Below are positions 18,486 to 28,225 of a stretch of DNA of 32,693 nt, one piece after another. A program made the translations under genes and the position numbers. This stretch comes from Pelomyxa schiedti (taxonomy: Eukaryota > Protista > Evosea), in NCBI GenBank assembly GCA_020536535.1, contig JAHLWZ010000990.1, positions 1 through 32,693 of the forward strand, in the 5' to 3' direction. Under the pieces are notes generated by a model that made no database searches, had not been told where the DNA came from, and saw only the letters and a program-made list of their open reading frames with translations. How positions within the stretch are numbered: position 1 is the stretch's first letter; each line of letters begins with the position of its first letter.

Positions 18486-18827
18486 TTTTTTTTTTTTTTG
18501 TGCCATTTGAGGTCGTGTTGAGGACAAAAGGGTTTGGAAAAATCTATTATTGTTTTATTCGTGTCCAAAGACACTGTTGGGTGATGCTTTGTGGTTTGTT
18601 TGGTGTNNNNNNNNNNNNNNNNNNNNNNNNNNNNNNNNNNNNNNNNNNNNNNNNNNNNNNNNNNNNNNNNNNNNNNNNNNNNNNNNNNNNNNNNNNNNNN
18701 NNNNNNTTTTTTTTTTTTTTGTGCCATTTGAGGTCGTGTTGAGGACAAAAGGGTTTGGAAAAATCTATTATTGTTTTATTCGTGTCCAAAGACACTGTTG
18801 GGTGATGCTTTGTGGTTTGTTTGGTGT
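18486..18827. other. Assembly gap (100 N at 18607-18706) flanked by an identical 121-nt duplication
   Basis: 18486-18606 equals 18707-18827. Confidence 0.9.
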
Positions 18828-19944: not shown

Positions 19945-20616
19945 CTACCTCAACATTGTGAGTAACATCTTGAATCTCTCAGCAGCATGCACAGAATGAG
20001 GAACATTAGCAGGCAACAAAACCATTTGGCCTGGTCCTACGTCGTGCACTGTCTTGTCAATGGTTATCTGAGCTCGCCCNNNNNNNNNNNNNNNNNNNNN
20101 NNNNNNNNNNNNNNNNNNNNNNNNNNNNNNNNNNNNNNNNNNNNNNNNNNNNNNNNNNNNNNNNNNNNNNNNNNNNNNNTGAGTAACATCTTGAATCTCT
20201 CAGCAGCATGCACAGAATGAGGAACATTAGCAGGCAACAAAACCATTTGGCCTGGTCCTACGTCGTGCACTGTCTTGTCAATGGTTATCTGAGCTCGCCC
20301 GGCAATCACCTGTTTTTTTGTTGTTTTATGTGGTCAGCATTATATAATCCAAGACTCCACTCTCTTTGAACATTCACAAAACCTGTATTATTGCAGAGTA
20401 TGGAGTACTGTGCTCAGATAAGCCTTGGCTCGCCTCAAACGCAAACACGGTGAGTGTTCCAGTCGGCTTTGTAAGCAGCGTTTTGCTGACCACACACCTG
20501 AAGAGCATTATATAAAGAAAGCCCATTTGGTTACCACAAACTAGCAGAATAGAAATGCCATACCCTGACGAGTAGTCGACAAGTGTCTCCAGCCCGTATA
20601 CAGTTCCCGCGTCCAT
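19945..20616 (-). CDS. Small cupin-domain protein (prokaryotic cupin_2-like), 2 introns; last exon duplicated by an assembly gap
   Basis: VVSKTLL..TLTVFAFEASQGLSEHSTP..AIIQVIAG..PANVPHSVHAAERFKMLLTMLR*. The stop lies in the left copy at 19945. Confidence 0.85.
19959..20300. other. Assembly gap (100 N at 20080-20179) flanked by an identical 121-nt duplication
   Basis: 19959-20079 equals 20180-20300, the same overlap length as at the first gap. Confidence 0.9.
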
Positions 20617-20758: not shown

Positions 20759-23563
20759 CTATGCGCCCAGAGAATTTAGTGCTGATATCAAGTGACTGAC
20801 ACTCGTGGACCTGATGCAGGAGAGTGAGGACTTGTTGCCAAGAAAGGCCCTGAGCATAGACTGCAAAGTTGTGCTGTCCGGAGGCAGTTTGACTACAAGC
20901 ACACGCACAGCAAACAGGAGGAACGAGGCAATGACTGAGGTGATGAAGCAGAGTTCAGTGGGTGAGTGAGACAAGCTCAGAACTGTTTCAATGTAGCCGG
21001 CAGTGCAGGACAAAGGAGTCACCGCAGCTTCTGAGGGGGCACACCTACTTGTTGTTGAGTAGTAGTTCCGAAATAGTTTGGTATAGAGACACACCTGGAA
21101 ATGGTATGGTCAATACAGAACTGCTCCAATGACTTCTGAACTGACAATAAAGTTATTTTGACAGGGAGTCCCTTCGAGGGCTGTGCTTTCAGCAAAGTGC
21201 CAACAGCAAAGAATTTCTCGCATAATAGATGTACACTCTCTTGACCAACGTTGATCCTGACAACCTCCGGCATTGCCAGGGCTGAGGATTCAGGGGAGGA
21301 AAAACTGTCCCTGTCATGCAATCCTAAAAGGTTCACAAGTGCGGCAGCGGTAAGTGTTTGTAATCTTCCTGGACAAGTGTCATTCTGAATGGCCCACCGT
21401 GAAGTAGACTTTGGAAATGCTAAAAACGGCATTCCCGGCATTATACAGATATCAGGGCCTCTGCCCAAAGATGATGTCCACAAGTGGCCTGCCGCAAAAG
21501 CGGCACCTTTGGCAGCCCGCTCAAGCAATTTGAGTTCAAACTCACTTGCATAATGCAGCACGTGCGTCACATATTGCACTTCACTGCTATATTGCCACTC
21601 ACACTCTCGCTCATGGGAGGCCAGAAGCTCCTGGAGGCGCCGAAATTTGGAGTCACCATTGTGAAATACTGACAAAGAGCCTGTAGATGCCTTGCTGGTG
21701 CCAAGAGTGGCATATTTAACATAGCTTTTAACAAGGACAAGGCACAGTTTACCTTGACGACAAAAGTATGAGGAGGAGGTAACAGAAAGTTAGAGAAACC
21801 TGATTCGATGAGAGGACAAGCACAAGATATCAGCTCCAGAAAATGTGTGTCATTAGGTTTCTCCAGAGTGACATCAATGACAAGAGTACTGAATCCTGCA
21901 GATTGGGCTCTCTCAGATATGCGTGAGAACAGCTGTTCAACTGGTGGAGGGAGCCCAGCCGTTGGGTTGCTTGGATTTGGTGTGTAGTAGAAAACAGGTA
22001 TTCCTTCATCTGTTTCTTCCAAGGCCACCGCATCTGCAAGGAGGTATTGGACTTCTAAGTAATCCCTCTCCGGGCATAATTGACAAACAGGGGAGTGCTT
22101 TCCATTGTTTATGTTAATGAATAAGCGCAAGGCAGTTGTTATGGCCTCCATTCCACTTGACACAATCCCAACACATCTCAGATAAGGCACCAGTTGAGAG
22201 TAACGGGTACTAATTATCGACGCTATAGCAGTCTTTATATCCTTCACTGTGTAGGGTCTCAGAACGCTCAGCACTGTGAACAGCTCATCTCCCAATAATT
22301 CCAACAAGCGACTGCATACAGTTAAGCTCCGTCGATGAAAGGACATTTCCAAGCCAAGGTTCTGAATCACACCCAAGGCATTGGGTACAATGGGAGGGAG
22401 AGCAAGTGATTTGCATCTGGCCTCAATCTCATGTATTTTTACTGCCAGCCCATGAATCAATTTGCTTGAACATGCACGCAAAAGGTACGTTTCTTGGCCT
22501 GAACATTCACAGCACATCCTGGTCTCCGAATGCGCAGAGGAAAGACTTGGGTCTCGAGGGGCATTTCCCCACAGGAGCTTTTTACATGCTCTCCTCCAAT
22601 TCCAACACTGATTAAGACCGTCATCAACACTTGTTGGCCAAATTGTGTCCAGCAGTCGGATGTCAGGCTGCAGGTCCGAATATGTGGGCCATTCGTGGAA
22701 AGTGTCTCCTTCATACACTCTAGGACTATTGCGACTGGAATGCGCTACTTGTATGGCTGCAAACAAAGAAGGAGTTGCACCGATTCTGTATATGAGCTCT
22801 TCAAGATTTTCCGGTGTATGACCCACAAAACTCGAGATATGGAACGTGGGAGCCAACTTATAACTTGCCGCCACAGAGAACGTGCTCACTATACAACAAA
22901 GGGGGAATGGGTCGATTACGTTTGAGAAGTTGAATACATACAAGATATATCAGAAAGGAGTCCAAGAGCCCGGAGGTTTGATAGTAATATTGTAGCATTG
23001 ACATTGGAGCAGTACAACCTACCCCACAGTTTCTGTTGGATAAGTGATTACACATGTGTTCCCAAGTCACATAGCGCAATCAAAACTTATACATATTTAG
23101 TGGAGCTAAAAGAAAAGAAAACAAAACAAAGCAATCAAACAAACAAAAGACAGCATTTCATAACGATAATACATTCGTCCAAAATACGAACCACTTCGTG
23201 CTGGGCCGCGGGAATCAATTTGAGGAGGAACGAGAAGGCCGACCCATAACCGTCCCGCGCGTAGGCCACGCACAGGGGCCCACGCCGTCGCCACACCGAC
23301 GGCGGCACGGCGGCAACCCCCCCGATTATTATGGGACGCTGCTGCTGTTGGTTCGGGGTCCTGTCGTTGGCGGAGTGAACACCGTAGCACGCCGCCACGT
23401 CTGAGTTCTCAGGGAACTGCTGTGCAAGCCACGTCGCACGGTACTCGACGCCCGAGGGCGAAGTGGATAGGGGCCGGCTGCACGTGGGTATGTGGGCGTA
23501 CCATGTCATTCGTGCGCGCCACCACCACTGCAGTGTGTCTGCTGCCGCCTCTTCATTCATCAT
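20759..23563 (-). CDS. Large protein with a divergent Cys/Met-metabolism (cystathionine gamma-lyase/synthase-like) PLP-dependent domain, multi-exon
   Basis: Ordered motifs VSSGMEAI, TPNPSNP, LVIDVT, spliced VKSYVKYATLG (candidate PLP lysine), RDSFSSPES and VVRINVGQES. These match the family pattern SSGMAAI / ESPxNP / VVDNT / HSxTKY / SLGxxES / IRLSVGLE. Confidence 0.65.
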
Positions 23564-23712: not shown

Positions 23713-23827
23713 AAAAAAACCTGTGAAATGTTAAGGGAAGAGCTATTGGCAATGGGGGGAAGAGAGGGAATCGGGGGATGGAACCGCAGTCCGACCCCTT
23801 GCCTTCTGCCCAATCTCCACTCCTCCT
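23713..23827 (-). ncRNA. Candidate structured small RNA, copy C
   Basis: Shares GAGTGGAGATTGGGCAG and CCCCCCATTGCCA..AGCTCT.CCC.TAACATTTCACAGG-T7 with copies A and B. The central arm differs in sequence but still pairs. Confidence 0.5.
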
Positions 23828-23905
23828 GGATGCATTTCGGGAATTTCATCTGGGGGAACAAATTGTGGGTCGTCACTGAACTGACGAGACCAAAAAGTCA
23901 GGAGG

Positions 23906-24021
23906 AAAAAAAAACCTGTGAAATGTTAGGGGGAGAGCTGCTGGCAATGGGGGGATGGCAGGTCTTCCGGGGGAGTTACCACATCCGGCCCCTGACATCT
24001 GCCCAATCTCCACTCTCCCTC
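23906..24021 (-). ncRNA. Candidate structured small RNA, copy B
   Basis: Same scaffold. Central arm GATGTCAGG/CCTGCCATC and CCGG/CCGG, followed by a T9 run. Confidence 0.55.
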
Positions 24022-24278
24022 AGACAAACTTCGGTTTCTTCAAATTAAAAGACCGGGTTTTTTGTAGTGACATTCAAATTGTGGTAAGAACGTCCTCTTG
24101 TAGATTTCACAGGGGTCTTGGGGTATCCGGCACAGATAAATGTCAGGCTTTCTTCTTGTTGGGCTTGAAGGTGACTGGTGACGGGGCCATTGAGGGTCAA
24201 AGTCTGTTTCTGTTTGACCACAAGCACACGCACAGCAGGGTGTGAGCGCAATGAAAAACGCACAAAAAAAGTTGGAAG

Positions 24279-24392
24279 AAAAAAAAACCTGTGAAATGTT
24301 AGGGGGAGAGCTGCTGGCAATGGGGGGGTGACAGGGCACCGGGGTAATCCCCTGGCGGCCCCCTGTCACCTGCCCAATCTCCACTCTCCCTC
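24279..24392 (-). ncRNA. Candidate structured small RNA, copy A
   Basis: Same scaffold. Closing stem GGGAGAG/CTCTCCC, central arm GGTGACAGGG/CCCTGTCACC and CCAGGGG/CCCCGG, followed by a T9 run. Confidence 0.55.
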
Positions 24393-24412: not shown

Positions 24413-24456
24413 CAAATTAAAAGACCGTTTTTTTTGTGGTGAGACAAATTGTGGGA
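24413..24456 (-). promoter_or_regulatory. DUSE-like element (TCCCACAA, about -64) plus AT-rich box (TTTTAATTTG, about -30 to -21) upstream of copy A
   Basis: Matches the dictyostelid upstream sequence element consensus [A/T]CCCA[C/T]AA at the expected distance of about 60-65 nt. Equivalents at 24079-24086 and 24041-24050 (copy B) and 23863-23870 (copy C). Confidence 0.45.
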
Positions 24457-24485: not shown

Positions 24486-27400
24486 TTACAGCAGTGTGTG
24501 CTGGGAAGGATCGAGTCTGCGGGTCTTGGGGTGGTTGCCTCTTGGGGCATCAGGCACATACAGATAACCATCAGGCTTTCTTATTGTTGGGCCAGCAGGT
24601 GTCTGTGGAAGGGGTGATTGGGGGTCAAAGTCCGTTGGCTTTACTCTTCTCTTAGTAGGAAGAGTTGGACTTATGACGGTTTTAGCGGCCCCTATCTCGG
24701 TGGCAGTTCCATGTTGTGAGGGAGGAACAGTCGCACGGTGACGAGAACCGCCGCCCGGACGAAGGCAAGGAGGAACTGATGAAGGTGTGGGTCTGAAGTT
24801 GCCACGACTTACCGGAGCCATGTTGCCTCCTTTTCTGTGAACCACGTGATCAGTCGGAACATCCGTACAAGCACCTTGGCAAGATTGTGACCAGTCAATT
24901 TGAGGCATTGTACACCTGAGATACATTGATGCTTTGCGGTGGAATGTTTCCACTCCAAGTCGATCAGGGTGCTTCACAAGGATATTCTCGCTACCTTGGT
25001 GCAGAAACTCAAGGAGAACAGGCCTCATGGTTTCATCTGTGCAGACATCCAAAAGCCACTGAAAAAGGGATGGGCGGTCCTTTGGGTCAATGCTAAAATA
25101 TTTCCCTGACACGCTCAGATCCACGAGCACAGCCTCGGCGAGCATATGTACCGTCAAAGTGCTTTCCACATACCCGGCAGCAGATACAGCAAGTTGGGAA
25201 TTGATGGCACCCAGCAGGAAAAGGGTGACAGGCCACACAGTGGCACTCCGTGGTACCTTGTAGTAAAGTACCTGCTCCACGTCAAGAGCACCGAGCCGTT
25301 GGGCCAACAGTGTCAGAACCTCCTGCAATGCAATAATATGCTTATTGAGCTTTCTGTATCCAATGGCCAAGCCGTCCGTACCTCCCTTTTTGCTGGATTC
25401 AGGCCTCAGCCTTAAAACAGTTTCAAACAGGTGGATTGGATCCTTAAGGGAATCCCAGCAAAAGAGGTCATTGAAGTGTAGCCACAGGAGCGCCTCTCCC
25501 CTGCACCCCTTCTGAATCAGCTTCACAAGTGCGGTATCCATCTTGAATGTCTCCGTACCGCCAGGTTGTTGGGTGGCTTTACCCTCAGCTCTCAGAAAAG
25601 GAAGCAATCCTGCAGCAGCTGTAACTGTTTGCTGTGGCTGGGGTGAGTAATGGTGAATTGCTTTCCTTTCCTCGAATATGGCATAAGTATTCTTCGGTAA
25701 ACCAATGAAGTCCTCAAATAGCATATGAAAGTGCCCTGAGCGCTTAGGTATCAGAGTGTCTACAAGCAACTCTGAGAGCAACTCTCCCTTTAGTTCGGCC
25801 TTAAAATCAGGCTGAGCACTAGTCAATTGAAATATAGTGCCATTATTCCACTGGCACGCCGATTCGAGTATCAACTTAACCGTCCAGCTGGGCAATGGTC
25901 CACCTGCGACCTTTTGAAACCGAGCGAACAGGTCCGAGAAAATTTCCACAGCCTCTTTACTGGTAGGGTACCTGGCGAGGTTACACAGCAGGTTGGGAAG
26001 GTTTCTGGTAATCTCCTCGTCGCTATCACTGAACTCTGGACTGAGGATAATTGTCAGCGTTACCCACATCTGGCCGAGAGACGCCGCCAGCGCTATAGTA
26101 GATTTTTCGAAAGGTGGCCATTTGTGCGCTGTGAATTCTGAAGGGAATGGCATCTCATCCCATCGGGTCGGGGTGGAGGCAACAAGATCCAGCATCGCTT
26201 TGCAAGCCAATTTGAAGTTTTTCTCCGACGTGCAGGCCGCCTTCAAAAGAGGAGTACAGAAGTGCGCGATGTTGTATTTCTTGTCACTCGGCACTGCAGT
26301 GAGCAATACTCTACACGTGTCGGGATAACCTCCTGCCATGGCGGAACAGAACGGATTCAGATAAAGGGTTTGATTCCTGTTATAGAGGATGCTAGTACCA
26401 GAAGGAGATTTCTCCACTACGGCCTCGATCACTGGGACGGCTCCAGTGGTGGAGGCAATTTCAAGCAAATCCCTGGTGTGGTAAATGTTATCCAATGGCG
26501 TTCTGGATATCAACCCTGCCACCCAGTTTCTTATCAAAGCCTTGAGCACTTCGTCATCTTGTCTTGGTGAAAATACTTGCACCGCCTTTAGATGCTGTCT
26601 CGCAGCAGATATGCCAAGACAGGTGGCAACACGGAGGTTTCTGTTGTTGACGTTCTGTGAATGCTTCGCCGCATTCTCGTCATTAATGCAAATGCCTTCA
26701 GAGTGTACACGTTCTATTACTTTGGCCCACGCAACAAAGAAGTGATACTGGGCATGTGACATGGCATATTCAAATGCACCTGAAAAAACACACAAGGAAT
26801 CAGTCATGAGAAAGAGGCAGGAAGCACAAACCTGGAATGGAAGCCGGCAAACACTGAAACTGTCCATTGAAGTCCCAGAGAAGCTTTGTCGCCACTTTTA
26901 TGGCGCCATGAGCAGCGCACGCATTTATTTGATTTGTGATGCTCCCCACCCTGTTTTTGATCCACGTCATCATGCTTTGCAGTCCCCATGGGTGGAAGAC
27001 CTCCGCCATCCTCACGACAAACTCGATTTTTCTGCCGTCGTAGTGCTTCAGATGAACCACGGCTGCGGTGGTGGCCCAGTCGCATGATCTCCTTTTCCTT
27101 TTGCAACAGCACAACGAAACTGGATCCGCGGGTTCTGCTGTTGAAGAAAATTCCTTTCCGAATAGATTTCTGTGTACCAAAGTCCAAAGAATCCCGATTT
27201 TTGAGACTGTAAGAGAGTGTGAAGTCTTTCTCCAGTTGTCGGCTAGGTCGGCCAACAACACCTCACTGCTGTTTCCCCTGCTTTCTTACGGTTATATTCT
27301 GATGTCAAAATACTTGTGTGAACCTCTCATTCTTGTCACTAAGCATTGTCGTCGCTCGGTCCGCACTTGTTCCCGATCCCTCACTTGTGGTTTCAACGCT

Positions 27401-28157: not shown

Positions 28158-28225
<68 letters not shown>

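Follow-up and report, generated by a model that had tools for sequence, protein, structure and literature searches.

A putative family of hairpin RNA genes with a DUSE-like promoter, linked to an ankyrin-like protein family, in the amoeba Pelomyxa schiedti

Introduction

In bacteria, RNA families are often linked in the genome to a specific protein family; in eukaryotes this is rare. Type III toxin-antitoxin systems, which are bacterial, pair an RNase toxin with RNA pseudoknots that are cleaved out of a single transcript. The Yrl genes of bacteria are found no more than 4 kb from the gene of their protein, and Y and Yrl RNAs share a general plan: 80–130 nt in length, with a conserved protein site in the stem, a variable top, several paralogues and an oligo-U end (PMC4030889, PMC4201824). 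Vault RNAs are Pol III products of about 100 nt with a panhandle and a variable central domain, and their genes carry internal A and B boxes (PMC9179338; trypanosome vtRNA, PMC9326685).

Among amoebozoans, the Class I RNAs of Dictyostelium are encoded by multicopy genes with a DUSE about 60 nt upstream, an element that stands at this distance before ncRNA genes of both Pol II and Pol III, and a T-run downstream (PMC7919456). These RNAs, a proposed protein sponge, pair their 5′ and 3′ ends into a stem next to which sits a short invariant motif, followed by a variable centre; they are about 60 nt long, have an 11-nt motif, start with AAG, end in CUGU and are so far reported from Dictyostelia alone (PMC7919456). 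For ncRNAs of Pelomyxa we found no Rfam family and no account in the literature searched.

Results

The window, that is the whole stretch of DNA analysed (32,693 nt of P. schiedti, contig JAHLWZ010000990.1), was the subject of an earlier note made from the letters alone, which described three minus-strand units with conserved ends and variable middles and proposed that they belong to an undescribed small RNA family. All three units were located, downstream of a protein gene:

24486–27009, minus strand: linked protein gene Pelo_15161 (823-aa public model; one intron, 26780–26831)
24446–24455, minus strand: DUSE-like promoter element of A (CCCACAATTT), 63 nt 5′ of the predicted +1
24288–24392, minus strand: RNA gene A, type 1, predicted 105 nt plus oligo-U
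24374–24382 and 24316–24323, minus strand: core strands of A
24279–24287, minus strand: terminator of A, Pol III-type T9
24125–24208, minus strand: duplicated 3′-end fragment of the linked protein gene, 77% identical to 24549–24636
24076–24085, minus strand: promoter element of B (its initial C replaced by A), 64 nt 5′ of the predicted +1
23915–24021, minus strand: RNA gene B, type 1, predicted 107 nt
24003–24011 and 23943–23950, minus strand: core strands of B
23906–23914, minus strand: terminator of B, T9
23860–23869, minus strand: promoter element of C, only 42 nt 5′ of the stem
23720–23827, minus strand: RNA gene C, type 1, predicted 108 nt
23810–23818 and 23748–23755, minus strand: core strands of C
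23713–23719, minus strand: terminator of C, T7

The 5′ block said to be invariant is identical over 17 nt in A, B and C, the 3′ block is near-invariant as described, and each unit runs directly into the T7–9 run reported for it (T9, T9 and T7). The change of the closing stem in copy C is likewise real in the type-1 alignment. Because the fragment at 24125–24208 duplicates the 3′ end of the linked gene, A and B are read as products of a tandem duplication of gene end, promoter and RNA. The promoter spacer of C's paralogue on C596 measures 59 nt, against 42 nt in C, and C scores weakly with the promoter model; having lost part of its spacer, C may start at the wrong place or not be transcribed. 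Homology between C and the C596 cassette stops about 30 nt past C's T7. An assembly artefact can be set aside, since the middles of the units differ by 30–35% and contigs from a DNA run of the assembly's own sample cover them. Contigs of the only RNA run reach parts of the flanking genes but none of the units; they derive from a long-fragment single-cell library that would likely miss such RNAs.

Elsewhere in the window, an expressed gene without a Pfam match directly follows copy C (21567–22943, minus strand), and its RNA contig reveals a 47-nt intron at about 21751–21797. The contig starts with a 43-nt tandem repeat (1–164) and contains a long poly-T run at 28160–28220. At 18486–18827 and 19959–20300, two exact 121-nt direct repeats are spaced by 221 nt; these repeats also occur on other contigs and are probably scaffold-join artefacts.

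Searches of the P. schiedti assembly (52,367,397 bases in 5337 contigs; 52.4 Mb genome, PMC8887013) extended the group well beyond the window. The 17-mer of the 5′ block has 35 genome matches at up to two mismatches, six of them exact, versus two for its reversed control. Pattern searches returned further type-1 copies on C306, C596 and C2327, a second subtype with seven copies on C417 and one on C867, and a third subtype on C253. The search of this genome with a covariance model that the earlier note had proposed, carried out with a model of the core only, yielded 27 places on nine contigs at E<0.02, and a sequence-only model of promoter plus 5′ core matched 23 genes over its full length, nine of them unread copies that fall at places that the structure model also found. 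The family comprises about 25 genes on 7–9 contigs in at least three subtypes. Fifteen copies were read (predicted RNA length 102–155 nt); for nine others, as for the TROVE gene, U6 and the loci next to distant protein homologues, the data consist of position and score. What the first reading had missed are the promoter element upstream, some 22 more genes and the family of the linked protein.

Rfam returned no match for the units, either at the gathering cut-off or at E≤10, and ARAGORN returned none, which upholds the description of the family as new. Together with negative motif checks, these searches also bear out the absence of tRNA, 5S, SRP, RNase P/MRP and C/D snoRNA signatures, and no family copy has an Sm site, C/D boxes or a cloverleaf. 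Motifs of SECIS elements, K-turns and SRP helix 8 are not present. A U1 variant, suggested by an ACTTACC before one copy, was rejected: the motif lies upstream of the start, and the true U1 genes are elsewhere. Beyond the P. schiedti genome, a homologue of the RNA family was found in neither metagenomes, viral contigs nor prokaryote genomes: the promoter-plus-core pattern gave nine metagenome matches, approximately the number expected by chance, all without closing stem or T-run and at most 22 bits; viral contigs gave none, and prokaryote genomes three, again at chance level. A, B and C are very probably, on sequence grounds, members of an undescribed P. schiedti ncRNA gene family.

The 1691-nt contig C2327, whose ends overlap by 77 nt (a circular or tandem unit), carries RNA A as an exact copy that lacks the promoter element, together with a second, truncated copy. 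What is left there of the protein gene is a remnant of its end, and a GC-rich stretch of about 150 nt folds back on itself. At C253:111.9k, a broken copy (1423–1560 of that locus) retains promoter and 5′ core, has its 3′ half inverted and faces an intact type-3 gene.

Upon comparison of the subtypes, only GGAGAUUGG and CCAUUGCC (9+8 nt) are common to all, so that the long 5′ and 3′ blocks, which had been taken for the scaffold of the family, do not hold that role beyond type 1. The two strands face each other as an internal loop with a short helix on either side. Each subtype has its own closing stem, apical arm and tail, and arms from different subtypes show near-random identity. The core reads GGAGAUUG, and the sole variant observed is GGCGAUUG, an A-to-C change in one C417 copy. 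The ACAUUUCACAGG tail is confined to type 1. In type-1 tails (24288–24304; L050 4412–4428), YTAAC-N6-YAG-G is kept while the six middle bases vary; absent in types 2 and 3, it looks like a branch point with a 3′ splice site and could equally well form a CCU/AGG mini-hairpin. A spliced-leader RNA or an intron end (YTAAC-N6-YAG-GT) was rejected, as the copies have no 5′ splice site or Sm site and types 2 and 3 lack the tail.

Could the core be a diverged Ro-type helix, and the RNAs Y- or vault-RNA-like ligands of a single TROVE protein? The size, the Pol III features, the conserved stem with variable top and the several paralogues are those of Y RNAs (PMC4030889), the GGAGA/UUG of the core resembles GNCGAA(N)G (PMC4201824), with the sole A-to-C variant located there, and the genome has one TROVE gene (C807:26546–27809) and three MVP genes (C352, C810 and C516). 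A Y-type terminal stem, variable loop and oligo-U are present, while type 3 and some type-2 RNAs exceed 80–130 nt. However, GGUCCGA, GNCGAA and the bulged C occur in none of the 15 copies, Rfam gave no Y, Yrl or vault match, the A/B boxes of vault RNA genes (PMC9179338) are absent, a Ro60-type vWA domain was not found in the genome, and neither model places a family gene next to the TROVE or MVP genes. We therefore consider this explanation unlikely. The TROVE-domain gene at C807, without a Ro60-type vWA match, is possibly TEP1-like. A 12-mer of the 5′ core 4.5 kb from the C352 MVP gene is matched by neither model, and a vault link was rejected.

Folding each copy alone gave z-scores against shuffles of −4.2 for A, −0.7 for B and −0.2 for C; only A outperforms its shuffles, and energy taken by itself is weak evidence. 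Because the plus strand folds about as well as the minus strand, the strand call rests on promoter and terminator. The claim that structure is maintained by compensatory change finds support in the alignment of six type-1 copies, in which 91% of cells are paired in the proposed structure, versus 47–60% in slid-register controls, and three base pairs show two-sided changes. As the six sequences are related, the covariation is supportive, short of proof.

The middles of A, B and C are 65–70% identical, against 42% for random sequence. Among different type-1 RNA species, middle identity amounts to 63–89%; within one species it rises to 96–100% despite diverged flanks. Between B and C596a, for instance, the middle is 100%, the spacer 89% and the downstream flank 61% identical, and between the type-2 copies of C417 and C867 the middle is 98–100% and the spacer 48–51% identical. 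Gene conversion could contribute to this homogeneity within species. The earlier note was right that the middles of the three units differ and wrong that their sequence is free: the middles are homologous and conserved within subtypes, which speaks against a freely variable module or guide.

A further reading is base-pairing guides of a single-hairpin H/ACA-like or pre-miRNA-like kind. In H/ACA RNAs, the ACA box lies 3 nt from the end and 14–16 nt from the pocket. Type 1 has an ACA 3 nt before the U-run, an internal loop and a long hairpin, but the ACA occurs in five type-1 copies only, being missing from C596b and types 2 and 3, and its distance from the pocket is about 21 nt. Moreover, complementarity to U1 and U2 never exceeds 7 nt, antisense matches of the tail in the genome stay at control level, and the arms are bulged and conserved within subtypes. 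Guides are very unlikely. Since the two-stranded loop is the one part that all subtypes retain, and U1/U2 offer it no antisense partner, we infer recognition by a protein, and the RNAs would probably, with modest confidence, act by binding it through the invariant loop and not by target base-pairing.

The transcription signals are shared across the family. CCCACAAT lies 59–65 nt 5′ of a purine start, placed at the first purine of the stem, in 14 of the 15 copies read, the exception being C, where a deletion has shortened the spacer to 42 nt. This spacing is kept even though the spacers of many copies are unalignable (35–55% identity; random 42%). The same element (CCCAYAA) is found at −58 to −64 in 19 of 20 U1/U2 genes examined. 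We call it DUSE-like by comparison with the DUSE consensus. Genome-wide, CCCACAATTT occurs 529 times versus 76 for the reversed control, an excess of about 450 sites, and several hundred of these may mark unannotated ncRNA genes. T-runs follow all 15 family copies and only two of the 20 U1/U2 genes, and internal A/B box consensus sequences are absent from the 15 copies, with one B-like site at one mismatch in copy C only. T-runs without internal boxes make Pol III with an external promoter the most likely source of the RNAs; upstream element and T-runs across 15 copies agree with the Pol III-type, minus-strand transcription first proposed from the window.

At least 18 U1 genes in the genome score above the cut-off, often as divergent pairs about 130–300 nt apart, with three 5′-splice-site recognition ends (ACUUACC, ACAUACC and ACGUACC) and very variable stems; U2 is represented by about 30 dispersed genes, each roughly 215 nt long and extended in the 3′ domain.

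The promoter also bears on SINEs, MITEs or other non-functional repeats, of which dispersed copies in both orientations and the A-rich tails of type 2 are reminiscent. Retroposition would lose an external promoter at fixed spacing, however, and the roughly 25 copies have no internal A/B box, no target-site duplications around them and an RNA body far better conserved than the flanks. This reading is largely refuted and highly improbable.

The promoter element of A follows the stop codon of Pelo_15161 at a distance of 31 nt. The product of Pelo_15161 is modelled as a degenerate ankyrin or helical-repeat solenoid with a disordered tail (pLDDT 68; best Z 9.2, to ankyrin proteins), and a generic helical stack at the C-terminus of the model gives a Z of about 6, which is not significant. 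Fold matches point to no known RNA-binding or catalytic fold or domain, and fold comparison gives no match to Ro60/TROVE, a transposase or a HEPN nuclease. The protein has a conserved basic loop, and dN/dS values of 0.20–0.30 indicate purifying selection on its family, of which we found no member outside Pelomyxa.

Nine protein copies, at 44% identity or more, were counted for linkage. Seven have a firm RNA gene 105–1051 nt from the matched region; the other two have a weak model match (C596, 621 nt) and a 12-mer of the 5′ core (C825, about 720 nt). Proximity by chance is about 0.2% per locus. A protein-gene remnant on C253 is flanked by two RNA genes, and four weak promoter-model matches lie within 1.2 kb of two homologues of 33% identity (0.03 expected). 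Because the loci share ancestry, the count demonstrates co-duplication, not function, and the linkage may reflect descent through repeated segmental duplication.

The RNAs might then bind an ordinary cellular partner as Class I analogues, with the ankyrin gene a mere co-duplicated neighbour. Homology blocks spanning gene and RNA genes look like segmental duplication; about one third of the RNA genes have no nearby protein copy (C306, C843, C867:57.8k, C253:48.7k and C253:164k); and the Class I RNAs of Dictyostelium are products of multicopy DUSE genes that bind an RRM protein (PMC7919456). On the other hand, the linkage persists between paralogues that adjoin different RNA subtypes and share only 41–47% identity, and probably at the 33% homologues too. 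RNA genes are found upstream or downstream of the protein gene and in either orientation, and because orientation varies, the linkage has survived rearrangement. Duplicated blocks, moreover, stop shortly past the last terminator. We regard an ordinary partner as rather unlikely. That the linked ankyrin protein is the cognate partner of the RNAs is, from sequence, a tentative proposal, and a cognate gene-RNA cassette is possible but somewhat doubtful.

Discussion

Our overall reading, to which we assign a probability of about 0.5, is a Pelomyxa multigene ncRNA family of about 100–150 nt whose hairpins bind protein, with the ankyrin protein as leading candidate partner. Each RNA gene would be an independent transcription unit, in which the DUSE-like element fixes the start about 62 nt downstream and the oligo-T run ends the transcript. 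The RNA is predicted to form one long hairpin with a 5′/3′ closing stem, an invariant internal loop (GG-AGAU-UGG opposite CCA-UUG-CC) and an apical arm that differs between subtypes; its tail is single-stranded and poor in G. A protein would bind the loop and be held or regulated by the RNA, which would serve as its scaffold, tether or decoy; the apical arm would confer subtype identity, and the ankyrin-protein gene and RNA genes would travel together as a cassette.

The family resembles Class I RNAs in being amoebozoan and multicopy, with a DUSE-type element about 60 nt upstream, a T-run downstream, a 5′/3′ stem, a short invariant motif by the 5′ stem and a variable centre (PMC7919456). By contrast, the Pelomyxa RNAs are 100–150 nt long hairpins with a two-stranded core, a 3′ tail and linkage to a protein gene, no copy has the Class I 11-nt motif at the 5′ stem, and no Class I match was found in Rfam. 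The general plan of Y and Yrl RNAs is shared, whereas the bulged C and GGUCCGA/GNCGAA are lacking and the linked protein is ankyrin-like, not TROVE. From vault RNAs, similar in length, probable Pol III origin and panhandle design, the family differs in having no internal boxes, sequence match or MVP adjacency. Like type III toxin-antitoxin loci, it sets a protein gene beside repeated structured RNAs, which would co-diverge with the protein; unlike there, the RNAs have separate promoters and no catalytic domain is recognisable in the protein. A eukaryotic cassette in which the hairpin RNAs next to each ankyrin-like paralogue bind and control it, the pairs co-diverging, must be called doubtful.

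With its DUSE-like promoter, an archamoeba joins the dictyostelids, the only group for which we found such an element described, and the CCCACAATTT-type element, with its roughly 450 excess sites, offers a handle on the remaining ncRNAs of P. schiedti. The family would be a second multicopy, DUSE-driven family of mid-size RNAs, in an amoeba without aggregative development, and bears on the proposed tie of such RNAs to dictyostelid multicellularity. The linkage in P. schiedti names a testable partner protein. If true, the cassette would parallel, in a eukaryote, the Ro60-Yrl loci or the type III toxin-antitoxin systems of bacteria, and it might serve this multinucleate amoeba in defence or be a selfish module.
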